DNA of 64,000 bases, from the NCBI GenBank assembly GCA_004431415.1, contig QPMI01000040.1:248001-312000 (forward strand), read 5' to 3'. This DNA comes from Cyanophora paradoxa CCMP329 (taxonomy: Eukaryota; Plantae; Glaucophyta). Made by a program: the position numbers and the translations under genes. The notes beneath the pieces are model-generated. The model made no database searches. It saw only the letters and a list, made by a program, of their open reading frames with translations, and was not told where the DNA came from. Positions 183 through 14,890 of this stretch are shown one piece after another. Positions within the stretch are counted from its first letter, which is position 1; each line of letters opens with the position of its first letter.

Positions 183-3100
183 TCAGGCGACGGTGCAGGC
201 CTTGGAGCGGCCGCCGCCGCCGCCGCCGCCGCCGCCCGCCGCGGCGGCCACGCGCAGCTCCTCGATCCTCCGCTGCGCCCGCGCGATCCGCTCGCGCCGC
301 TCCGCCAGCGCCCGCTCGAGGTACGGCACGTCGGTAGTGACGGTGACGGCGACGGCCGGGCCCGCCGCCGCGGCGGCCTCGGCCCTCTTCTGCCCGGCGG
401 ACGCGGGGCGCAAGCCGAGCGCCGCCGCGTTCGGGAGGGACTCCAGGAGCGCGTCCAGGTTCTGCGTGCGTACCCCCGTTGGCGCTCGAACGAAAGCTAC
501 GCGAAAGGGAGGGGGTACACGTACCGCGAGGAGGGCGACGTTTCCTTTCGTCATGTACGCGCGTGACTGCGAGTCGGGGTACAGTCCCTCCACCGCCTGC
601 AGGGGGGCTTCAGGGGGTACGGTAACAACGCCGCCGTGGGGGGCGCAGGGGGGTACCTGGCGGTCGGAGACAACCACCGGCCTCAGCGGCCGCTTGTTCA
701 GCTCCGCCAGCTGCGGAGGGGGAGGCGTTGATCGACGTGCGCAGCGAAAAAAGGCGGGGGTACGGGAATGCAGACCTGGAGGCGGTCGCGGAGGAGGGGG
801 TCGGCGATTGCGGCCTTGGAGAGGAGGGGTACGAAGGCCGAGCACTGCGCGGGCGTCGGGCGAAGACGGAACGGGGCGAGGGGGGGTACGGGGGCGAGCG
901 GGCCTTGACGACGGCCTGGGCGCCATCGTCGCCGCCGCCGCGGACGGCGCCGGCGGAGGGCGGGCGCTGCGTGCCGCCGCCGGAGCAGTCGAGCCAGCAG
1001 CGGGCGCCACGGTGGGCCAGGCCCCGCACGAACTGCTCCGCGAAGGACGCGTCCGCGGCGTGGCACCAGACGAAGAGGAAGGGCGATGGCTCCTCCACGT
1101 CGCAGCGGGCGCCGGGCGTCGCGAGCAGCGCCGCCGCCGCCTGCGCCAGGGCCTCCTGTCCCGCGGGCCCCGCCCCGGCGGCCCCGCCCGTCGCCAGCCG
1201 CTGGGTCAGCGTGAGGGCAAAGGGCGGCAGTCCCGCAGCGAAGAGGGCGTCCCTGCAGCCGGGCGGGCGCGTGAGCGCGTGAGCGGCGGGCGCGCCAAAT
1301 CGGACGGCGCGCAAAGCAGCGCACGTCGAGAGATCCCTGCGCAAGCCGCGAATCAGAGGTGGGTAGAAGATCGATCGAAGAGGTTTAAAAATGGCTTCGC
1401 GCACGCGAACTGCTGCTTCATAAGGGCTCCTTGGAGCTGGTCGTCCAGTGCGCACTTCTCGCGCCAGACAGGGTACACCGCGCGCCCGAGCCGCCGCGCC
1501 GCCGCCAGCTGCGCCCGGCACCGCGCCGACCGCCTCGCGGCGTCGCTGCGGGGCGGGTCTGAGGGGGGGTACGGAACGGAATCTGAGCGGAGTCTCGGCT
1601 CACCTGACCACGAAGATGAGGGCCTGCGCTTTCTTGAGCCCCGCCGACTCCTGCGAACGAAGCGAAAGCCGTCAAGGCGGGGCGGGCGGAGGAAAAAGAG
1701 AAGGGGGGGGAATGCTTCGTTCGCGCACGTCCGCCTCGGAAGGGTCGTCCAGGGCGCACTGCGCAGGGGCGGAGCTTGAACTTAGCTTAAGCTTGAGCAA
1801 TCTTAGCTTCACGAAGTTCAGAGGTTAGCTTAGGGCTCAGCGGGGCCGGCTCTGCTCGGGGCGGGCGGCGCGAAGGGGCGGGGCGGGGCGGGGCGGGGCG
1901 GGGCCCACGGTCAGGTGGGCCGCCTCCAGGCCGGCGTGCAGTCGCCGCGCAAAGGCCGCGTCCTCGGGGGCGTGTCTGCGGCACGCGGTCCCGAATGAGA
2001 CGTGGAAGTTTAATATGAGAGGGAGGGGTATATTTCTGTGCGCACGAAATGAACGCGTCTCGGAGTCCGCTCGCGCGCTTGAGGGCCGCCTGCGGGGGGT
2101 ACGGTGAGTCCGCGGAGCGGGGTACGGGTGCCGGAAGAAAGAGACGGGGGTACGGCCACCTGGAACGAAACGTCGGGGTGGGCCTGCACCACCATCCTCC
2201 GGCTCGGGCCCTGCCCGACGGAGCGGGCGGGGTCGGCCCCTGCGCCGCGCTCACTTAAAGATAGTAGAAAGGCAGAGAGAAGAAGGAAGGAAGGACCGCG
2301 CTGGATGAGGAGGGTGCAGACGTCGAGCATGGCGGGCCCGCAGGCGACTGCGTTGTACAGCGGCGTCTCGCCCCTCGCGTCCGCCGCGCTGCCCCGGAAG
2401 GAAAGCTCGTACTAAGAAAGAAAGCGAGGAAGGCATAAATGTAGGAAGGGGGGTAGCGCACTCGACGGCGGCGTCGGACGCCTCGCGGGCGAGGCGGAGG
2501 GCCGTGTGGCGGAAGCCGTGCCTGGCGGCGGCGACGCCGTCGGCCTCGCAGGGGCTCCGGGCGGGCGGGCGGGCGGGCGGGCGGGCGGGCGGCGCACCGG
2601 CACGCGAGGAGGAGGGCCGACTCGCCGGCGTCCCCGCCGCCGCCTTCGCCGCCGCCCGCCGCCGGCTTCTCGTACCCCCCGTCCTCCTCGCCCCCGTCGT
2701 CGAACTTGCCCTGGCTTTGGAACCACCCCCCGCGGAACCGGCGCCGCTGCGGCCGTGTCAGAGATAGAAATCGGGGGGGTGGGGAGGGGCTCACGAGGAG
2801 GCGATCGGGGCCCTCGAGGGCCAGGAGGCGCATGGCGCCATGCGCCAGCGCCCGAATCGGCCCGCCTGAGAGTGTAAATACGTTCGGTCGGATCAGATGA
2901 AGAAGAGATGTATGCGAACAGATCGATAAAGGCACCCCGCGAGCCGGCCGCAGCCTTGAGCGTCGCCGCGAAGTCGCCCGTCCAGAAAGCCCCCTTGCAG
3001 AGCAGCGCCATGTCCAGGCACGCCCTGCCGGGGGCGTTCGTTCCCTATAAAAAAGGGTACAGTAAAATTCGAATTCGGACCTGACTTCGTCGACGAGCCC

Positions 3101-6100
3101 GTCGGCCGCGACGGCGGCCGCCGTCGCCAGAAACCTGCGGTGCCGGCCGCGGTTCGAGCGCGCGAATCCGAAAGCACATCTAGAATACCGCATATGTACC
3201 CCCCCGCCCTTCCGTAGAGCCGCGGCTCGCGGCTATCGAGCGCCAGCCTCCCGTTGAGTTCGTAGTAGCGCTTCGCGACGCCGCGCAGGATGGGCGGGCG
3301 GGGCGGTCCCGCCCGCCCGCACGCCTCGTCCTCGAGCTTGATGAGATGGGAGCGGACGTGGGCGGCGCCGCCGCGGGCGGCCCCGAGGGGCGTCATGCCC
3401 TCCTCGTCCTGAGCCTCCAGCGAAGCCCCAGAGGCCAGCAGGAGGTCCACCAGCCGCACGCTCTTCCCGTCCCTGCACGCACTGCGCGCGCGCGAGAGTG
3501 GGAGCCGCCCGTGAGCGATCGATCGATCCTGCGCCAGCAACGACAGCACGTGCGCGCACTCGTGGATCGGCTCGCCGCCGACGTACTGGATCGCGTCCTG
3601 GCTCTGGCGCTTGTACGCAACGTCGACCCTCGCGCCGCGCGAGAGGAGCAGCTTCACGATCGCCAGGCCCTCCTCCGTCTCCGCGCGCTGCGCAGCCCCC
3701 AACGCGCTGCGGAAGGTCGTATCCTTGACTTCCGCTCCCTTCGAGAGGGGAAGGGGGGGGGAGGTTCAGGCGGGGTGCGGTGGCAGGAGGGAGGAAGTCA
3801 GCGGGGTACGCCTCACCCTGTCGAGGAGCATCTGGACGATCTCAAGGCGGCGGCTGCCGTCCGGGCGGTGGCCGCAGGCGTAACCGAGCGGGCTCCCGTA
3901 GGGGGATTCCTCGTTGACGTCCGCGCCCGCCTCTACAATCATTCGGATGGTCTCGTCGTCGTGGCTCGCTTGGAACGCCTGCGGTGAAAAATCAAGAGGG
4001 GGGTACGGCGTCTAGAAGGACGGAGAGGACCGCGACGAGGAGGCCGGCGGGGGGCGCCCCGGCCGCGAGGAGCTCCCTCAGGGCGACCAGATTCTTCCTG
4101 CTCAGCGCGTTCACGGGCCGCGCGTCGGCCATGTTCGGTTTGCGCTCCAGGATCGTCCTGCGGCCGGAGGAGGAGGCTCGACGGCCGAACGGCGCGTCCA
4201 CCGCCGCAGCGCGTGCACGCGCACCGCAGGACGGCAGTAGAGCTGTTGCGCGCCGCCAGGTTCATCGGCTGCGGGCCGGGGCCGCATCAGATCAGAGGCG
4301 CGGCGCTCCTCGGCGCGGGAGGGAGGGAGGGAGGGCTCACATGAAGCTGGACGTCGCCGGTGCTGTTCTCCACGCTCGCCCCGCGGCTGAGCAGATCGAC
4401 GACGACGGCCTCCGGGGGGGACGCCGCCAGCGCCACCTGCAGCGGCGTCTTGCCCTCCTTGGTCTTGGCCTCCAGCTCCGCCCCGGCCTCCAGCAGGACG
4501 CGGGCCGTCTCTACGACGTCGCCCTCGAGGAGCTGAGAGGCCTTGGCGTGCATCGGCCTGCTCTCGTCGTCGAACGGGCTTCTCCTCGTGAAGTTTATGC
4601 CGAAGCTCGCTCTGCGCGGCGTGTCGGCCGCTGCTGAAGAGCGACAGCGCCAAAGAAGGGAGAGGGCCCGCACATTCCGCAAGAGACGGCGAGGTGGAGC
4701 GGGGTCAGGCCGCCGCCGGCGCCGGCGACCGGCTCGGTGGGGAGGGAGACGGGTACACCCATGTCGAGGAGCGCCTTGACGCAGGCGGGCCGCGCGCTGG
4801 CGGCCGCCGCGTGAAGGGCGCTGTACCCTTCCTTCGGCCCGTACTGCCGGGCAGTTAGCTAACATGAAAAAAGAACTCGCGGGGGGGTACAACGAAACCG
4901 GCGGCGCACCTTGGAGTCTCCTTTGGGGGGTACGAAGGGCGCCGCGAGGTTCACGCCCAGCTCCTTGAGGGCCCTGTGGTCCCATAAGAGTCGTACGGAC
5001 TCGAGAAGGGGGGGTACGACGCGCCGGAGGACCTCGGTCTCCCCGGCGGCGGCGGCGAGGAGGGCGGCGGACTGGCCGCAGGCGGCCACGTCCGCGCCGC
5101 GCTGCGCGAGGAGCCTCACACACTCGACGTGGCCACGCTCCGCCGCGATCTCCAGCGCCGACGCCTGCGCCGCGTCAGCGCGGGAGCAATTCGCGGGATG
5201 CCGGGGCCGGGTGGGGGTACGGGCGCGCCGTGCCCTTGAATCTGCGCTCGCGGGAGAGAATGCCTTTAGCGTTGGAGTCTGCCCCCCGATCCAGGAGGAT
5301 CTTCAGGACGTCCAGGTGCCCCCCCGCCGCCGCCTCCAGCAGGCTCGGCCAGGGCTCCTCGTAGTCGTACCCCCGCTTCTTCCCTTCGTCGCCCGCGGTC
5401 GGCGGCTGCGGCTCTCCGTCCTTCGCCCCCGCCCCGTGCTCCAAGAGGTACCTGCGCGTGAATCGGATCGCGCACCCCTGCAGAAACCGCGTACCCCCGG
5501 GCGCACTGGACGGCGGCGGCGTGGCCGAATCGCGCGGCGAGGTTGAGGGGCGTGCCGAGGCGCCTCCTGTGCACCCGCGGGTTCTCCTTGCGCTCTTCGA
5601 CGAGGTACTTCAGCGCTTCCAGGCGGCCGGCGCCCGCCGCGCCGTGCAGGGGGTACACCCGCTCCGAGATCAGCAGGCCGCCCGGGCCCTCCTCGGGCTT
5701 GGCGTCCCCCCCTGATGCCTCATCTTCTTCGCCCCCGTCCTTCTTCGGAGGCTTCTTGGGACCGCGCTCCAGCAGATACCTGAGCGGGTGTCTCACGCTC
5801 CAGAGAGTTCCGAGTCGATCAAAATTTCGAACGGCACCTCGTCAGCTCGACGCTGCCGCTCTCAGCCGCGCAGAAACAGAGCACGTAGTAGATCTGCTCG
5901 TGGAGCCAGCCGTAGCGGACCTTCTCCAGCTCGTTCTCGGGGCACCTGCTTTGCCTCCACCGCCATTCCGCGTCGTAGTTGCTGCCCGGCGGCGGCCCCC
6001 GCGGCGCCGGCCACGAGTCGAGCAGCAGGCGAGTGAGGGCGAGGCCGCCGGCCCGCGCGGCGGCGATGCACACGCCGGCGTAAGATCGCACTGCCTGCGC

Positions 6101-6805
6101 GGCGTGCGCCTCTCTATTCAGCTCCTCGTCGAAGCCCTGCCGCGCTGCAAGGAGCCGCCTGCGTCGAAGCGTCAGCGGCGCGGCGGAAGGGCCGCTCCTC
6201 GGCACTCAACGCGGCGCACTTGAGCGTCTCTGCTTCTCCTGAGCTGGCGGCCTTGTAGAGCGCGCACGGCTCGACGCTGTAGCTCGCATCTGCTTGGAGG
6301 CCGGTCGCGGAGAATGCAAGGCTGGCGGTGCGCTCGAAGAGGAGCCTGCCGGCCGCAGCGTACGGTCGGCCCACCAACGAGCAGCTGACAGCGGGGCAGG
6401 GTGCGAACCTCAGGGCCTCGCGGTGCCCGCCGCTGACCGCGTGCCAAATTGGAGTGCGGCCATCAGAGTCGGGGGCAGCGATGAGGGAGTTGGAATGGGC
6501 GCCGCGGTCGAGTAGCAACCTGTACAGCGGAGATCATCGCGTGCGCGTGGTCGGCGGCGCCATCGGCGGCGCTTCGAATTCGCGCACCGGCAGGCGTCCA
6601 CGTTTCCGACCGACGCAGCGTACGCAAGTGGCTGTCGTAAGCTCGATCAAGCTTTGCCGACGGTTTGCGCGGTAGTGGCCAAACCCGCACGCACCGTTAG
6701 GCCATCTCCGCCGCGCGCGACGTGCGGGTCTTGTGGAAGGTCAGCACCCCTAGCGTACTCGCTCCAGAAAGAGGCAAGTCCGTTCGTGCTCTGTGATCCG
6801 CCCAT
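183..6805 (-). CDS. Multi-exon ankyrin-repeat + TIR + TIR + coiled-coil protein with N-terminal MGxxxS and C-terminal CaaX (paralog A; both TIRs lack the catalytic Glu)
   Basis: Manual splicing gives ATG 6805 MGGSQSTNG...DGLT|PLAYAASVGNVDACR|LLLDRGA...DGRTPIWHAVSGGH. Many further ankyrin repeats follow (YPLHGAAGAGRLEALKYLVE, EGKTPLQVAL, EGMTPLGAA, GETPLYNAV). TIR1 reads DAFIS|HAPEDAAFARRLHAGLEAAHLT|CALDD...|AQALIFVVS|DAARRSARCRAQLAAARRLGRAVYPVW. TIR2 reads FLFVWCHAADASFAEQFVRGLAHRGARCWLDC...CSAFVPLLS. Then a coiled coil (ERRERIARAQRRIEEL) and the end RSKACTVA* (stop 183-185). Confidence 0.85.
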
Positions 6806-6954
6806 GCCGCGGCCGCTGTGGTTGTAACCACGCTATCTAACCACTAGTAACCAGCTGCAGGGGGGTACTAGCTCATAATTGGAAAGAGGATAGACCGGAC
6901 GGAGTTCATCCGGCGCTGCTCAGCAGCTCGCCGAGTCGTGCGAGGAGCGGCGAG
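6806..6954. promoter_or_regulatory. 149-bp putative bidirectional promoter between the two ankyrin-TIR paralogs
   Basis: Divergent ATGs at 6805 (-) and 6955 (+). The spacer is lower in GC and carries TAACCA at 6825, 6838 and 6848 plus the palindrome TGGTT-GT-AACCA at 6819-6830. Confidence 0.6.
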
Positions 6955-9900
6955 ATGGAGCTAGAGCCCAGCGAGGCACTGCTTATGGCCGCCGGGGCTG
7001 GAGACGTGCGCGAAGTTCGGTGCGCGCCCTGCAGATGATGAGCCGCTGCTTGCACAATCAACGCTCCTTGCAGAGACCTCCTCGCGCGTGGAGCCTTCGC
7101 GGATACGCCCTCGCGGCGACCGCTGACGACGAAGGACGGCAAGGAGATCCCCGTCGGCCGCACGGCGCTCCACGAAGCGGCTCGAGCCGGTCACATCGAC
7201 GTTTTGAGGTGCTGCGCGCAGCATAGCCCACTGCTGCCGTACGCGCCGCAGTTGCTGATCGACTGATGCGCCAGGATTCTCTGCGCCGAGCCATACGTGG
7301 ATGTGAACGTGCGCGCCTTGATCCCGGATGGGGATACAGAGCGCTACGGCCCTTCTCCGCTCGACGTTTCCGCCGCCTCCAACCGCGTGGATGCCATCCG
7401 CTTCCTCCTCGAGCGAGGCGCGAAGCAGCCCGAGAAGGCCCTCATCGCCGCCCTGGGAGCGAAAGTAGACACCAGCGACGCCGTCCGGTGCGTCGTATTC
7501 GCACGGCTCGCCCGCCCGCGGTCGCCTTGCGCGTGCTGACGTCTCGGCGGTTTCGCAGTGTCCTTCTGGAGACGGACGCGACCGCCAGCTGCAGGCACGT
7601 CATTTCCAGTCTAGCCGCTGTGCTCGTGGCGCATGTGGGCAGCTTGGGGACGCTCCAGTGCGCGAGCCCTCTGGCGGGCCGTTCTTTCCCTCATTCCGAC
7701 CCCCACGCAGGGCCATCCTGGCTGCAACCCCGGCGGGCGAGAGGCGAAAGGAGGCGGCCGGCTGCGCCTTCGGGGCCGCCCTCTCCGAAAGCGGAGCGGT
7801 CGTGCGGTTCGTTCGGACTTCCCATCGCTCGGCCAGCCGGCCCCTGACCGGTCCCAAGGGTCCTGGCCGCAGAGGGTATGCCAGTGGACGGGGAGACCCA
7901 CAAAGCGGGGTACACGGCCCTCGGCCTCGCGGCGCTCTCCGGCAAGCTCGAGGCCGTCACGTGCGCGCCGCCTCCAGATTTCTCGTACCCCGGACCTCAA
8001 AGGCTCGGCAGCGCGTTCGTTGAGCTGGGGGCGAGGCTCTCGGGTATCGAGAAGGCGGGGGGGAAGGACGGCCCGGCCCCCGACGTCATCTGTTGGGCAG
8101 CCGAAGGGGGGCACGTGCCCGTCATTCGGTACGCCCGTACCCCGGGGTGGGCCTGCCGGATCTGACCGGGGGTACAGGTACTTGCTGTCGCGCGGGGCGT
8201 CGCTGGAAGCGCGGGACGCGGAGGGGTACACTCCCATCCTCAAGGCGGCGGCCTGCGGCCACGGACCGGCGGTTGTGGCACTGGCTGAGGCGGGAGCGGA
8301 TCCCACCGCCCGATCCACGGGGCCGATGGGCGCCCCCCTCGAGGGAGGCGAGCCCTCGAAGGGTCTGGCCGACTTTGCGGCGGCGCTGTCGTACCCCCCC
8401 GTCCTGCGTCTCCTCCGGGCGCGAGGCATCCCGTACGACCTGTCGACGAAGTCGGGGGCCTTCGATAGATCCGCCCCGCCGAGGGACACCGAGTTCTGGA
8501 TGTTCTTTCAGGGCTGGAGAGAGGTGCCCCGGCCCCTTGCCCCGCCCTTTCTCCCGCCCGCGGTCCCGAGCGGCGCGCGCGCGCGCAGAGGAGGCGCACG
8601 CCGCTGGGCTGGACGGCGCATCGCGGGGACGCGGAGGCGGTGCGGGAGCTGCTGGCGGCCGGCGCGGACCCGAGCGAGCCGGCGCTCGTGCTCCGGTTCG
8701 GCGACGAAGGGAAGGTGGTATCCCAGGAGGGCGCGCGGCCGCTCTACGAGGCGGCCGCCGGCGGCTTCCCCGAGGTCGTGCGGCTGCTGGTGCAGGCGGG
8801 GGCGGACCCTGAGGCGCGCCAGCAGGACAGCGGCGGCGGCCCGAGCGCCAGCGCCAGCGGCGCCCTGAGCTTCCGCCCGCTCGAGAAGGCCATCGCCTCG
8901 GGCAAGGTCGAGGCCGCGCGGGCCCTACTGGAGCTCGGCTGCGGTGTCACGGACGACGCGTACGCGCCGGCGGCGGAGGGGGCGGAGCCGCGCGCCGCGG
9001 CGCTGCCCCTCGCCTGCGAGATCGGGAACCTCGACCTCGTCCGGTGCGAACGAAGGGCCGGCCCCCTCCTTCTTCGTCTTAACTTGAGGGACGCAGGGCT
9101 CTGCTGGCGCGGGGCGCCTCGCCGGCGTCGAAGCACGGGCACAGCGCGACGCCCTACGCGATCGCGGCCCGGGGCGGCCGCGCCGACATCCTCCGGTGCG
9201 TCTGTAGGGGTACGGTGGGCGTTATCAGAGATTGAGGGGCGGCGTGTGTGCAGGGCGCTGGTGGAGCGGGAGGCGCCGTCGCGCGACGTGGTGGAGAGCG
9301 TCGCGGCGGGCGCGGCCCGGGCGGGCGCCGTCGACTGCCTCCGCGTCGCTCTGGACCTCGGGGCGGATCTCCGCAGGCGATTCGTGGAGGAAGACGCGGC
9401 GCAGTCGGCCCACGGCCGCGGCCCGAAGCCCTTCGTGACGCTGCTGCTGCGGGCCGCGGCTGGCGGGCACCTGGAGTGCGTGCGGGAGCTCCTCGGCAGG
9501 GGCGCCGACCCGAGGGAGGTGGAGGGCGTGCCGCCGCCTCCGCCGAAGGACGAGGGCGGCGGGCCGAAGCCGCAGCAGCCGCCCGAGTTCGTCCTGAGCG
9601 GCCGCTCGGCGCTGGAGTGCGCGGCGGCGGGCGGGCACGCCGGCGTCGTGCGCCTGCTCGCCTCCCGCGGCGCGCCCGTCGACCGCCCGGGCTCGGGCCG
9701 CGACTCGGCGCTGGGGCTGGCGGCCGCGGGTCGGCACAAGGAGACCGTGCGGGCCCTGCTGGAGTGCGGGGCGGACCCCGCGCGCCCTGAGGCGAAGTAC
9801 ACCTTTCGCGGGGACGAGTGGTGCCCCGCGCTGCACGTCGCCGCGCAGAAGTCGGACCTCCACACCCTCCGGTGCGCTCCGCTTCGAATTCGATCTGTCT

Positions 9901-12900
9901 TGGTCGAGCCGAGCTCGCGGGCCGCAGCGTGCTGCTCGACGCCGGCGCACCGGTCGACCAGAGCGACTCGAAGAACCGGACGCCCCTCATGCGGCCCCTC
10001 GTCTCCTCCGACGGCTCCGACCCGACCGGCCTCCTCCCCACCGTACAGGAGCTGCTGCGGCGCGGGGCGGACCCCTTCCACGGCTCCAAGCCGACGGACG
10101 GCTCGGGAGACTTCATGGATCTGTGCATCCTTCACCAGGTTCGATCCTCCGCGGCCCCTCTAAATCTTCCGGCTTGCAACTGGATCTGATTTCGGGGGAG
10201 GGTGCAGGTGTCCTGTGGAATGACGCGCCTCGAAGTCCTCGTGTACCCCCCTCCCCGCCCCACGCCCCTTTTGAACACTGCACAGCCCCCCTGAAGCCTC
10301 CCCCCCCTTCTTCCCCCCCCCCTTCCCTTCGCGAAGCGCGATGGAGGAGGCGGGCTTTCGGGTACCCCGGCAGTCGGCGGCGATGGCGAGTGCCATCCTG
10401 TTTGCCTTCAGCAAAGGGGCTTTCGCTACCGCCAGGTAGCTAAAAATAGCCCCCCTTCGAATAGTGATTACTCGTACCCCGGCCAACAATCTTCGTTCGC
10501 AGGTGGTACCTGGAGCGCGGAGTCGACACGAGCCTCGCTTACCTGTCCGGCGAGGAGCGCGCGGACCTGCTGAAGGTCGGTGGTACCCCTCCCTTGGCGC
10601 CCGCCCCCCTCGAGCTCGGCCGGCCGTGGCGGCCGCGGTCGCTCCGATCGCGAACTGGGGGCGCGGCAGGAGCGCCCCTTGCTGCACGCGCTGCTCGTGC
10701 ACGCCACCGGCAAGCAGGCCGACGACTTCCTCGCCTGCCTGCGGTTCGACTCCCGGCGGGAACCTTTCTGTTCCCTTCCCTTACGGCCTTCGGCGTTCCA
10801 GGCTGGTCCTGGACAACGGAGCGGGCGTGAACGCGTCCTTCCGCGGGTCCACGCGTGCGTACCCCGCCCCAGTTCCGCACGTACCCCCCTGAGCGCCCCT
10901 CTGCAGCGCTGCACCTCGCCGCCGGGAACGCCGCGGCCGGCCTCGAGGCCCTTCGGGTGCTGCTCGAGCGCGGGGCGGACGTGCAGGCGCGTGGCAAGGG
11001 CGGGCGCACGCCGCTGCTCGTCGCTGTGAGCGGCGCCGGCAAGGACGAGGAGAGGCTCCCTTTCGTTCGGGCGCTCCTGGACGCGGGGGCGGACGTTGGG
11101 GCGCGCGACGAGGCCGGCCGCAGCGCCGCGGCCGAGGCGGCAGAGGCGCACAGCCTGCCGCTGTTCCGGCTCCTGATGGAGCGCGGCGCCGCTCGCCACG
11201 TCCAGGAGGGAGAGATCCTCGCGGCGGCGAGCCGCCCCCGCGAGAGCAACCGGAGCCGCGATGAGAAGGCCATCGCTGACGCGCGCAACTTCCTCGCGTA
11301 AGCGCCCCTCGCGCTTTCGGAAGCTCGGATCAGTCGGGCTGACGGGGGGTAGGGCGGTGCTGGAGGACGAGCTGCGGGAGGTGGAGGCGGAGGGGTACGC
11401 GTGGCCGGAAGTGGCGCGCGACGCGGAGGGCGGGCTGGCGGGCCGCGCCCGCGGCTACTCGATGGCGCTGCGGGCGGCGCTGGACGACGACTCGGGGTCC
11501 GCCGCGGCCGCCGACGACGCGCGCCAGTGGGCCGACCTGCTGCTCTGCCTGCGGGGGCCCCTCCGCCCGAGCGAGCTGCACCTGAAGCTGGTCGCCGATG
11601 AGGACGGCCCGCGCGCGGCGGCGCTCGCGGCGGCGGCGCGCGTGCTGCGCCTCGAGGGCCGCGCCGCGCCCGAGGCGGCCGCGGAGGAGGAGAAGCCCTC
11701 CAGGGCCGCCGGGCGCTCGGACAGGAAGGCGGAGGGGGAGGCGCAGAAGGACGAGGACCCCGCGGAGGAGGCAGCGGACGCGGCGGACGGGGAGACGGCG
11801 CTCCACGCCGCCTGCCGCGCCGGCCTGCGCCTCACGGCCCTCCGCCTCGCCCGCGCCGTACCCCCCGACGCCGTCGAGTGCGCGCGCTCGCGCGCCTCGC
11901 TTCGGCTGTGCGGCCCTCTCTCACTCGCGGCCGGCTGCAGCGCGGCGGACGCGGCAGAGGAGACGGCGCTCTCGCGGGCCGTCGCCTTCGGCCCGCCCCT
12001 CTTCGACGTCTGCGCCCTCCTCATCCAGAAGGGCGCGCCCCGCGCCCCTCCCGAGCTGAGCTGCCTTGGCTGAGTTGCGGTGCAGGGGCGGACCTGGGGC
12101 GGCAGATCGGCAGCGGGGAGGGCGGCCGGCAGAGGCGCGCGCTCCTTTTTGAAGCGCTCTCAAGCCCCTCCCCGGTGACACTCGCCGCAGGGTGGTGCTG
12201 GACGCGACGCGCGACGCCGCGTACCGCGCGCGGCTGAAGCGCGCCGCCACCAGCCGCGACGCGTTCATCTCGTGCGCTCGCGTACCCCCCTTTTCGACCG
12301 GTGCCCCGCTCGGGTCCGACGCGGCCGACTCGGCCGGGCGGCAGGTACGGGCACCACCCGCCGGAGGTGGCGCGCTTCACGGCGCGGCTGAGGGACCGCT
12401 TCCAGGCCGAGCAGGTCTCGGTGCGCGGGGAACGCCGGCGCTCCTTGGGACCCAGCGAGGGGGAAGCTTCGAGGGGCCCCGAGGGACGTCCCCCTAGGAC
12501 CTAGCTCCCCCGCCTCCATCCTGTCTGCCCCTGACCGCGCCTCAGTGCTGGATGGACGAGATGAAAGCCACGGGTAAACTCCGCTTCGCGCGCCGCATAC
12601 GCGCCGGGCCGCTGCCGCTCGGTGTGAGCCTGACCGGGGTCCCCTGCAGGCATCGAGGCGGGGACCGAGGTTCGCCACGTCGTCCGCTGCGGCCGCCCGC
12701 GGCCGCCCCGCCCCTGACCGCCCCGCCCCGGCTGCAGTGGCGGGAGCAGATCGGCGTCGGAATCAGGGCCGCGCGGGTCGTCGTCTTCATCGCTAGCAAG
12801 GCGCGCTCAGCGTAAGATCCGAGAATCCTGCGGCCTGACTGACGGCCCACCCGCCCTCGCCCGCCCTCCTCCGCAGCACTCGTGCGCGTCGGACTGGTGC

Positions 12901-14723
12901 ATGCTCGAGCTCTCCCGGGCCCGCGGTGCGCCCCCGCGCCCCCCGCCCTGCCCCGGCCCGCCTCCTCGCCCCCCTGACTCCCGGGTCCTCAGACCTCGGG
13001 CGCCCCGTCTTCCCCGTGTGGGCCGAGGCGCCCTTCCCCCTCGACGAGCGCGCCTCCGGCCTCCTCCGCGGCTGCCGCTTCCTCGACCTCTCCTCGTCCG
13101 CCCCGCCCCGCGCTTGGCTCAGCTTAGTTTAGTTAAGCTTTGCATGCGCAAAGATTTAAGCTTAGTTAAGATCTTAGCTTATCCAAGATCTAAGATCTAA
13201 GTCCGCCCCTTCCCACGCTTGGCTCGGCTTGCTCTCTTAGCTTGCGCCCCTCGGCCAGGCCGGCGCTCCTGGAGGCCGGGTTCCCCCCCCTCCTCGCCGA
13301 CGTGCGCCGCGCGGTGGAGGGCGCCGCCGCCGCCGACCCCGCAGCCTCTGAGGATCCCGCCCGCGTCCGCCCCGCCCCGCCCCTCCCCGCTCGGCTTGCA
13401 GGCTCTAAGCCCAAGTTCACCTGCTGGCAGGCGCTGCTCGCGATGCCGGGGGCGCGCTGCGCGGTGCGCCCGGGGTCCTTCCTCGCCCTCTGGTGCGCGC
13501 CGGAGGCCGCCCCCCACGCCGCCGCCGTCCTCGCCGCCCTCGCCTTCCGCGGCGTACCCTGCTGGCTCGACTGCCCCGTACCCCCTTTCCCTCTGCCCCT
13601 TCTCGTCCTCGTCCCTCGTGAGCCGCCCCGCCGCAGCTCCCGGGCGACTCGGCGGAGACGCGGGCGGCGGCGGACGCGGCGCTCGCCGCCTGCGCGGCGT
13701 TTGTACCCCTCCTCTCCCCCGCCCCCTCCGCCCACGACGATCGCCTCCTCGCCGAGCGCATCCGGGCGCGTACCCCCTCCCAGCGTACCCCCTTCCTCCC
13801 CTTCCGTTCTGTACCCCCTGAACCGTCGCGCGCGCAGCGCGCCCGCGCCGCCCACCGCCCCGTCCGCTCCGTTCTCCTCTCGGGCCTTCACGTGCGTCAT
13901 ACCCCTGGGGCTCTCCCCTTTTTTCGATTGATTTGAACGCATCTACCCAGGTCCCCCCGGCGCTGGAGTACTCGCTGGCGCGTACCCCCAAGTTCCCGTT
14001 CTTCCCCGAGGACCCCGACAGCTTCTTCCCCGTACCCCTCCCTTCCCCGCGCGCACCCCTCGCAATCAGCTTCCGGCTGACCCGCAGCCCCGGCCCGCAG
14101 TGCCTGAACGTGCTCCTAGCCGAGGCCGGCGGCCCCGCCCCCGCCGCCCCGGTACGGTACCCCGACCCCGAGCCTTCCCTCCCGCGCGCCCCTCGCCTGA
14201 ACGCGAACGACGCCGCGGGGCAGCCGAAGCTGGAGGGCCCGCCGGCGCTGCACGCGCCCGCGACCGCAGCCTCCCCCGAGGAATCGGTGCGCGCGCACGC
14301 GGCGGCGGCGGCGCCCGCTCCTTGGTTGAGCGGCGCTGACCGGTTCGGTGTGGCCCGCCAGGCCCGCGCGGCGGCGCTGCAGGCGGAGATCGCGGCGCGA
14401 GACCGCGAGCTAGAGCAGGTGACCCCTCATATCAGATCAGATCAGATCAGATCAGATCAGATCTTGACCCCTACCCCACTTACTCCGGGCGGGGAACGCA
14501 GCTCGAGGGGCGGGTCGCGGAGCTGGAGGCAGCAGCGGCCCGGGGCTCGAAGAAGGGGAAGAAGAAGGGCGGGACGCGGCCGAAGGGGACGCCGCCGCCC
14601 GACCCACCCCTCCTCCTCGCCCCGGGGCCGGGGCCCGCCGGGGCTTCCGGATCCCACGGGGCGGCGCCCCCGGGCAGCCATCGCGATCGGGAAGACAGGA
14701 GCAAGTCGTGCGCGCTGATGTGA
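6955..14723 (+). CDS. Multi-exon ankyrin-repeat + TIR + TIR + coiled-coil protein with C-terminal CaaX (paralog B; TIR1 retains the catalytic Glu)
   Basis: ATG 6955 MELEPSEALLMAAGAGDVREVR|DLLARGA...GRTALHEAARAGH. Many ankyrin repeats (EGYTPILKAAACGH, RPLYEAAAGGFPEVVRLLVQAGAD, GRSALECAAAGGHAGVVRLLASRGA, GRTPLLVAV, GETALHAAC). TIR1 reads RDAFIS|YGHHPPEVARFTARLRDRFQAEQVS|...MDEMKAT...WREQIGVGIRAARVVVFIASK|HSCASDWCMLELSRAR|DLGRPVFPVW. TIR2 reads FLALWCAPEAAPHAAAVLAALAFRGVPCWLDC...AFVPLLS. A coiled coil follows. The last exon (14502-14723) contains KKGKKK and ends RSKSCALM*. Confidence 0.88.
14430..14463 (+). repeat. (ATCAG)n microsatellite in the last intron of ankyrin-TIR paralog B
   Basis: atcagatcagatcagatcagatcagatcagatc read directly; related (GATCT/GACCT) tracts occur at about 34403-34437 and 35182-35210. 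Confidence 0.9.
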
Positions 14724-14787
14724 GGCGTACTAGGCTATGAAGGCTGCATGTATTTTAAGGATGATTTGAGGTTAGATTAAGGCTCAT

Positions 14788-14890
14788 AATCAGCTGGAAA
14801 TCAGCTGGAATCAGCTGGAATCAGGCGCGGCTTGGAATAATCAGATGAATTGTTTTTAATCAGCTGGAATCGGGCGCGGCTTGGATCAGA
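14788..14890 (+). repeat. Short tandem repeats (AATCAGCTGG units; ggcgcggcttgga x2) just 3' of paralog B
   Basis: aatcagctggaaatcagctggaatcagctggaatcagg ... taatcagctggaatcgggcgcggcttgga. Confidence 0.75.

Follow-up and report, generated by a model that had tools for sequence, protein, structure and literature searches.

Two head-to-head genes, termed here A and B, occupy the first 15 kb of a 64,000-nucleotide window of the glaucophyte alga Cyanophora paradoxa CCMP329 (contig QPMI01000040.1, positions 248,001 to 312,000 of the forward strand), a part of the window with 67–78% G+C and abundant short introns. The C. paradoxa genome as a whole has 67.6% G+C, with a mean of 9.2 introns per gene and a mean intron length of 86 bp (bioRxiv 10.1101/674762; PMC6704402). 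The start codons of gene A (6805, minus strand) and gene B (6955, plus strand; all coordinates are those of the window and the features are collected in Table 1) have exactly 149 bp between them, a distance given in an earlier note on this DNA and borne out both by the sequence reading and by the public protein P0001, which starts at the ATG of B with MELEPSEALL. Both proteins have a common architecture, composed of an ankyrin array, a first TIR domain (TIR1), a diverged second one (TIR2), a short heptad helix and a C-terminal CaaX box; the earlier note had described the same layout, and it was recovered with Pfam, hidden Markov models (HMMs) of the family, hhalign and reading frames. The family build also has a low-complexity tail between the heptad helix and the CaaX box. 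The two Pfam profiles proposed for checking this layout were both matched, Ank in A and B (searched as single exons) and TIR_2 (PF13676) in TIR1 of B. The proteins differ in length (A, ~1,420 aa; B, 1,758 aa in its RNA-supported form and 1,780 aa as annotated), the ankyrin arrays being of unequal size. Pfam lists only ankyrin and TIR families in P0001 and only ankyrin families in the reading frames of A, thus neither a nucleoside triphosphatase (NTPase) domain nor NB-ARC was detected there, which is in line with the earlier statements that both genes lack an NTPase and that ankyrins stand in place of NB-ARC and LRR.

The TIR1 domain of B carries both sequence marks of an NAD+-cleaving enzyme (NADase), a Glu in the WxxxE context (SDWCMLEL) and the BB-loop GIEAGTEWR. 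Pfam TIR_2 matches residues 1341–1455 of P0001 with 65.3 bits (E 9e-18; cut-off 28 bits), and the predicted model of this domain matches the fold of the SPARTA, SARM1 and RUN1 TIRs at a Z score of ~16, with the TIR-APAZ protein of SPARTA at the top (Z 16.4). The best PDB sequence match is AbTir (E 0.03), with Trp-x3-Glu aligned, and the PADLOC comparison of TIR1 gave ThsB and PDC-S66, the closest sequence matches being bacterial NADase TIRs. A look-alike search of Protein Atlas returned only generic TIR_2 clusters, and Pfam gave no TIR matches on the single TIR exons of A and B, which are too short. In A the TIR1 domain is degenerate: compared with B, the YGH motif (after DAFIS) and 10 BB-loop residues are deleted and SARCRAQL stands in place of SDWCMLEL, with Trp replaced by Arg and Glu by Gln, and the marks of an NADase are missing. 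Paralogue P0015 has SPRCRAAL at the same position, with Trp and Glu lost as in A. As judged from the aligned residues, the pair is catalytically asymmetric, B keeping the putative catalytic Glu and A having Gln.

Gene B corresponds to the public model tig00000158_g10181.t1 (EukProt name), i.e., P0001 of 1,780 aa, which was the one near-identical match when 1.8 billion representative proteins were searched with a 226-residue plus-strand exon. P0001 could be placed exactly on the window as 36 exons between 6955 and 14723; in the form supported by RNA, the exon count is 37 and the protein length 1,758 aa. Exon chaining across 10139–10906 gave 518 solutions and was ambiguous; the exons were taken from the P0001 mapping instead. 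RNA contigs of four runs from two studies were aligned to 8800–14790. A 3.9-kb contig spans B from 55–69 nt upstream of the ATG to 11877 with zero mismatches, and RNA joints were found for the introns 9044–9096, 9872–9927, 11298–11352, 12272–12344 (after DAFIS, phase 2), 12801–12876, 12926–12992, 13096–13258 (after DLS, phase 2) and 13365–13430. Another contig, of 4.7 kb (4,657 nt), runs from the TIR2 exons into the last exon, and the exonic length along this join, 435 nt, is that predicted by the public model. Gene B is expressed and correctly spliced: the loss of TIR exons from spliced transcripts, considered in the earlier note as an outcome that would speak against the pair, is not what the RNA contigs of the two studies contain, since they have the TIR exons of B spliced in as predicted.

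The reading frame of the catalytic motif depends on a GC-AG intron (12801–12876), which keeps SDWCMLEL in frame, and no GT-AG alternative does so. If B were spliced by GT-AG only between 12800 and 12877, the frame would be broken and the gene pseudogene-like, a possibility that is refuted by the RNA-shown intron. GC-AG borders occur in 4 of the 36 RNA-supported introns of B (12033–12085, 12135–12190, 12801–12876 and 13766–13837; donors GCGCGC or GCGCGT), three of which were seen in RNA contigs, and the model of gene A needs at least one such intron too (donor GCCCGC after 904). It follows that gene modelling in Cyanophora must allow GC-AG introns, as GT-AG-only gene finders would break such genes and, in B, would frameshift the catalytic motif. 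The public model departs from the RNA at one more place: P0001 keeps 22 residues from the intron 13365–13430, by which its inter-TIR linker exceeds that of the real protein. At window positions 12375 (C>G) and 12386 (G>A) a differing RNA contig was observed in three of the four runs, one per run. The G>A change would turn FTARLRD into FTAQLRD, which is the sequence of the P0005-group paralogues, therefore close paralogues of B are probably expressed as well and partly align at these two positions.

The second TIR domain is less evident, as in B it falls below the Pfam threshold. The family profiles of TIR1 and TIR2 were aligned by hhalign over 81 columns (probability 94.9%, E 4.8e-8), with Arg at the column of the catalytic Glu. 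Pfam TIR_2 matches TIR2 of P0015 (residues 222–334, 37.8 bits), which is 57% identical to TIR2 of A, and two stretches each in P0012 and P0013. Two AlphaFold models of moderate confidence, built on alignments of 8 sequences and with predicted local distance difference test (pLDDT) scores of 66 and 64, show the beta-alpha pattern in both halves. A predicted model of TIR2 only retrieved the TIRs of RRS1, SARM1, ThsB and AbTir at Z 8–9.7, mixed with the related deoxyribosyltransferase fold. Since the hhalign homology, the Arg at the Glu column, the Pfam call in P0015 and the TIR-like model all point the same way, TIR2 is taken to be a real, although non-catalytic, TIR homologue. Beyond TIR2, a heptad a/d spacing of Leu, Ile and Val extends by eye over ~30 aa in A and ~33 aa in B, with weak matches to Pfam coiled-coil families. 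A CaaX box stands at the end of every family member that has a complete C-terminus, i.e., CTVA in A, CALM in B and P0014, CSLM in P0005 and P0006, CSVS in P0012, CIVM in P0013 and CCVF in P0015, and this motif suggests membrane anchoring of A and B by prenylation.

Genes A and B share 42% identity over the C-terminal 450 residues (blastp E 1.7e-42), from the last ankyrin repeats through the CaaX box. Seven of their introns match in both position and phase, with one further match if an alignment gap is allowed; the four common introns listed in the earlier note are all present among these 7–8. Protein searches gave 13 further family proteins, all with tig000 names, which are those of the C. paradoxa long-read assembly (bioRxiv 10.1101/674762; PMC6704402). 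The family thus numbers at least 14 members, spread over at least 12 contigs, and has been seen so far only in this genome; the sole outside match, an ankyrin-TIR protein of Pythium brassicae (P0011), covers TIR1 only, and a tblastn search of the window with family queries turned up no additional member. Long identical stretches are shared by P0002, P0005, P0006 and P0007, and of these P0006 (tig00021116_g18416) and P0007 (g18418) are on the same contig, with gene numbers that differ by two. These four may be recent tandem or segmental duplicates or assembly redundancy, in which case the count of 14 is slightly inflated. The model of P0008 (tig00021571_g22378) ends with pyrroline-5-carboxylate reductase domains (PF03807, PF14748) and is probably a fused gene model.

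A tree of the TIR1–TIR2 region has one deepest split with 100/100 support, and A and B are placed on its opposite sides, therefore they are not each other's nearest relatives. Clade I contains P0010, P0012, P0013 and the pair of A and P0015; clade II contains P0009, P0008 with P0014, and B with P0003 and the P0005 group. Because A and P0015 form one clade (100/100) that shares the loss of Trp and Glu from TIR1, the dead TIR1 is old and conserved rather than freshly decayed. The common architecture, the 42% identity, the 7–8 shared introns and the placement across the deepest split support the old inverted duplication that the earlier note had proposed, and the adjacency of A and B dates from the first duplication of the family. 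The arrangement does not seem to recur: among the contig names of the 13 public paralogues there is no other contig with both clades, although unannotated partners would be missed, and the relatives look like unlinked singletons instead of the repeated head-to-head pairs that were to be sought. Unlinked singletons without catalytic asymmetry had been named as a finding that would speak against a functional pair; the singletons were seen, but the asymmetry exists.

Gene A was modelled by splice-aware dynamic programming trained on the exons and introns of B, and three junctions were corrected against the paralogues. The N-terminal third of this model is approximate; the joined model was compared locally with B and the family, and databases were searched by single exon. 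HMMs built from the TIR1 and TIR2 columns of the paralogues match A with independent E-values (i-E) of 1e-17 and 1e-28, respectively. The N-terminus, MGGSQST, fits the N-myristoylation pattern G-x-x-x-S. A public protein of gene A was not among the matches of the protein database searches, and the exon-based search gave only the A-like paralogue P0015. The genome of Candidatus Amoebophilus asiaticus is rich in ankyrin-repeat proteins. A hypothetical protein of the same organism is the best hit of the 521-aa open reading frame in the Trinity transcript DN6163 (at least 1,567 nt), which is assigned to tig00000158_g10180.t1 (PMC6704402 supplement). Gene numbering and this ankyrin-type best hit suggest that gene A is probably the public model tig00000158_g10180. 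The RNA runs contain 0.50–0.53 of the words of 4800–14790, the expectation being 0.43 if B were the only source and 0.53 if both genes contributed. Since DN6163 is assigned to g10180 and the share of RNA words is above the expectation for B alone, gene A is probably transcribed. The RNA contigs of B start at ~81–95 bp from the ATG of A, so that a shared bidirectional promoter is very likely.

Table 1. Features of genes A and B, in coordinates of the window
Feature	Positions	Strand	Basis and remarks
Gene A coding region	183..6805	-	Own model, ~36 exons, ~1,422 aa; stop 183-185
A start, MGGSQST	6785..6805	-	Read from sequence; presumed ATG, no upstream in-frame ATG
A ankyrin region	2297..6695	-	Pfam Ank, Ank_2 and Ank_4 on seven stop-free frames
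A TIR1, degenerate	1325..2089	-	Three-frame reading; family TIR1 HMM (i-E 1e-17) on locally joined model
A TIR1 exons	2089-2046, 1975-1909, 1758-1729, 1650-1604, 1545-1405, 1336-1325	-	
A Gln codon (SARCRAQL) at catalytic-Glu position	1509..1511	-	Alignment with B and family HMM
A inter-TIR linker and TIR2	525..1252	-	Family TIR2 HMM (i-E 1e-28); exons 1252-904, 844-776, 710-657, 596-525
A last exon: heptad helix, Gly run, CaaX CTVA (186-197), stop (183-185)	183..461	-	Three-frame reading
Inter-ATG interval, 149 bp	6806..6954	.	B 5' untranslated region (UTR) and presumed bidirectional promoter
Gene B coding region	6955..14723	+	Exact P0001 mapping and spliced RNA contigs; stop 14721-14723
B ankyrin region	6955..12032	+	Pfam Ank_2 (E 4e-82), 10 stretches on P0001
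B TIR1	12191..13095	+	Pfam TIR_2, 65.3 bits; fold match Z ~16; RNA-confirmed introns
B TIR1 exons	12191-12271, 12345-12420, 12546-12573, 12650-12669, 12738-12800, 12877-12925, 12993-13095	+	
GC-AG intron, donor GCGCGC	12801..12876	+	RNA joint in three runs, splice-site reading, public model
B putative catalytic Glu codon (SDWCMLEL)	12907..12909	+	Aligned with AbTir Glu (kdwtnyEl), PDB sequence search
In-frame 66-nt intron, inter-TIR linker	13365..13430	+	GT..AG joint in all four runs; retained in public model
B TIR2, diverged, predicted non-catalytic	13431..14151	+	hhalign, predicted fold, RNA contig of 4,657 nt
B TIR2 exons	13431-13577, 13637-13765, 13838-13891, 13951-14031, 14101-14151	+	
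B heptad helix (14362-14418 and 14502 to ~14560), basic/Pro-rich tail, CaaX CALM (14709-14720)	14362..14723	+	Reading frames, P0001, RNA contigs

SARM1, plant TIRs and bacterial TIR NADases cleave NAD+ or produce ADP-ribose-derived signals. The interpretation favoured here, which is considered somewhat more probable than all others taken together, is that A and B are intact, intron-rich genes of one family, the products of which are membrane-tethered, with B as a putative NADase and A as a non-enzymatic scaffold or regulator. In the proposed mechanism each protein would be tethered to the membrane via prenylation, A perhaps through N-myristoylation too, and the ankyrin array would bind a ligand or a partner and hold the C-terminal module in check. 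Upon activation the TIR, the pseudo-TIR and the helix would self-associate, and TIR1 of B would cleave NAD+ or make an ADP-ribose-derived signal, an activity proposed because the Trp-x3-Glu motif and the BB-loop are kept. The protein A, the catalytic residues of which are lost like those of its closest paralogue P0015, would most likely act as the non-enzymatic scaffold or regulator. Several points weigh against this interpretation: the NADase activity of B and the membrane anchoring are read from motifs and an immune role is drawn by analogy only, the exon structure of A is a predicted model and its identity with g10180 comes only from gene numbering and the ankyrin-type best hit, the TIR2 models are of low confidence (pLDDT 64–66, 8-sequence alignments), and the coiled coil was judged by eye from heptad spacing.

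Among the known systems, SARM1-type or "TIR plus repeat" receptors would come closest to the proteins in their mode of action, and the proteins fall outside the class of paired nucleotide-binding leucine-rich-repeat receptors (NLRs), because NB-ARC is absent. As in SARM1/TIR-1, the SARM1 TIR being a fold match at Z 15–16, helical repeats of B precede a presumed oligomerising element and a TIR that keeps the putative catalytic Glu, but B has ankyrin instead of ARM repeats and no SAM domain (Pfam, P0001), and it also carries a CaaX box, a short heptad helix and a further TIR, which is non-catalytic. A similar order of domains was described in Dictyostelium TirE, in which two diverged tandem TIRs come after RCC1 repeats and the diverged copy escapes the standard Pfam models (PMC13142454). 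By description, which is the only level at which they were compared, TirE and A/B both have a repeat array and then two tandem TIRs with the diverged copy missed by Pfam, whereas the repeat type and the lineage differ and no CaaX or ankyrin is mentioned for TirE (PMC13142454). In contrast to the bacterial TIR_2 NADases (AbTir, ThsB, SPARTA), A and B are eukaryotic and intron-rich, are fused to ankyrins and a second TIR, and have a lipid-anchor signal. The Pythium brassicae protein P0011 also joins ankyrin and TIR, with 36–38% identity over TIR1, but it matches only ~28% of the TIR-TIR query and has no evident second TIR or CaaX box, its C-terminus being ...PAMK. Within the literature that was searched there is no description of a TIR or an ankyrin-TIR protein in Cyanophora or glaucophytes, and the genome paper (PMC6704402) mentions neither.

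One may ask if these proteins are NADase receptors at all. They could instead be membrane ankyrin scaffolds with TIR adaptors, similar to MyD88 and MAL, or serve a housekeeping function in NAD+ or nucleotide metabolism, and in neither case would they be immune receptors. TIRs can be pure adaptors, the structural matches include the TIRs of MyD88 and MAL, and the catalytic Glu is missing from one TIR in every member and from both in the A-like clade. However, SDWC(M/R)xEL and the BB-loop GIEAGTEWR are almost invariant in 11 of the 14 members, which points to selection on a catalytic site, and bacterial NADase TIRs (AbTir, ThsB) come nearest in sequence; this explanation is therefore regarded as unlikely, though worth keeping in view.

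A second alternative, suggested along the lines of the earlier note by analogy with plant NLR pairs, is that A and B would form an obligate, co-regulated membrane complex of a sensor and an executor, in which sensing or restraint would fall to the dead A and execution to the catalytic B, without NB-ARC. RRS1/RPS4 resemble the present pair in the head-to-head orientation with a short interval and in having one partner with the catalytic TIR motif and the other without it, and the RRS1 and RPS4 TIRs are among the fold matches of the family TIR models. The 149 bp between the ATGs, the end of the B transcript at less than 100 bp from the ATG of A, the catalytic asymmetry and the persistence of the adjacency since the deepest family split all speak for such a complex, and chance adjacency of two of ~15 members among ~25,000 genes is, by our own estimate, very unlikely. 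Nevertheless, A and B lack the NB-ARC that defines plant paired NLRs, and also LRR and an integrated decoy; the pairing is not recurrent among the paralogues found, as the 12 other members found are spread over 11 other contigs, none with both clades, and no partner was detected for the A-like P0015. Adjacency is also the expected remnant of a local inverted duplication. The genome is compact, with intergenic distances that average 770 bp and many overlapping UTRs (bioRxiv 10.1101/674762; PMC6704402), and since the paralogues are singletons it was argued that the proximity of A and B is such a relic. The obligate complex is accordingly held to be quite improbable. A regulator/enzyme relationship of the two proteins retains a similarly small probability, because the adjacency persisted since the deepest split and the catalytic residues differ. 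A bolder form of this thought, also by analogy, would make A and B the founder pair of TIR signalling free of STAND (signal transduction ATPases with numerous domains) NTPases, with a doubly lipidated, dead A that hetero-oligomerises with B through TIR, pseudo-TIR and helix and gates the NADase of B; it is considered very doubtful, and if true, it would provide a unicellular-alga counterpart of the plant sensor/executor TIR pairs. Least credible of all is that gene A is a decaying, non-functional copy, a pseudogene in the making beside an active paralogue: its TIR1 has lost the Trp and the catalytic Glu as well as YGH and some of the BB-loop, its branch was the longest among the first ten members compared and its public protein is absent from the search matches, but its frame is open over ~1,420 codons and ~36 exons with usable splice sites, TIR2, helix and CaaX box are retained, the same losses in P0015 indicate a form that is old and conserved, and one of its transcripts has probably been recorded.

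In bacteria, plants and animals, it is TIR domains that drive cell death and immune signalling, and their wiring in early-branching algae is little known. The glaucophyte family couples a TIR with the NADase motif to a huge ankyrin array, and not to NB-ARC/LRR, as well as to a conserved pseudo-TIR and a prenylation signal. With the intact pair of a putative NADase and a non-enzymatic partner that is favoured here, two arrangements, a catalytic TIR next to a dead one within a protein and a catalytic family member head-to-head with a dead one, offer a simple test, outside plants, of whether catalytic TIRs are regulated by dead ones.

Some minor observations concern the introns of the two genes and the region beyond them. 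The RNA contigs over the last exon of B (14498–14790) extend 3.6–4.3 kb beyond 14790, hence the 3' end of B is contiguous with, or overlapped by, a neighbouring transcript. Downstream of B, at 15–17 kb, the G+C content falls to 54%, and ten candidate frames within 14.8–30 kb gave no Pfam family. The last intron of B contains a (GATCA)n microsatellite of about six units (14432–14462). The longest introns, of 163 nt in B and 150 nt in A, each contain an AT-rich patch (at 13120–13200 in B and 1770–1830 in A) of words like AAGCTTA/TTAAGCT, which could be a small repeat or a low-complexity motif; such words recur widely in the window, e.g., at 15.3–17.3 kb, 38.3 kb and 52.4 kb.

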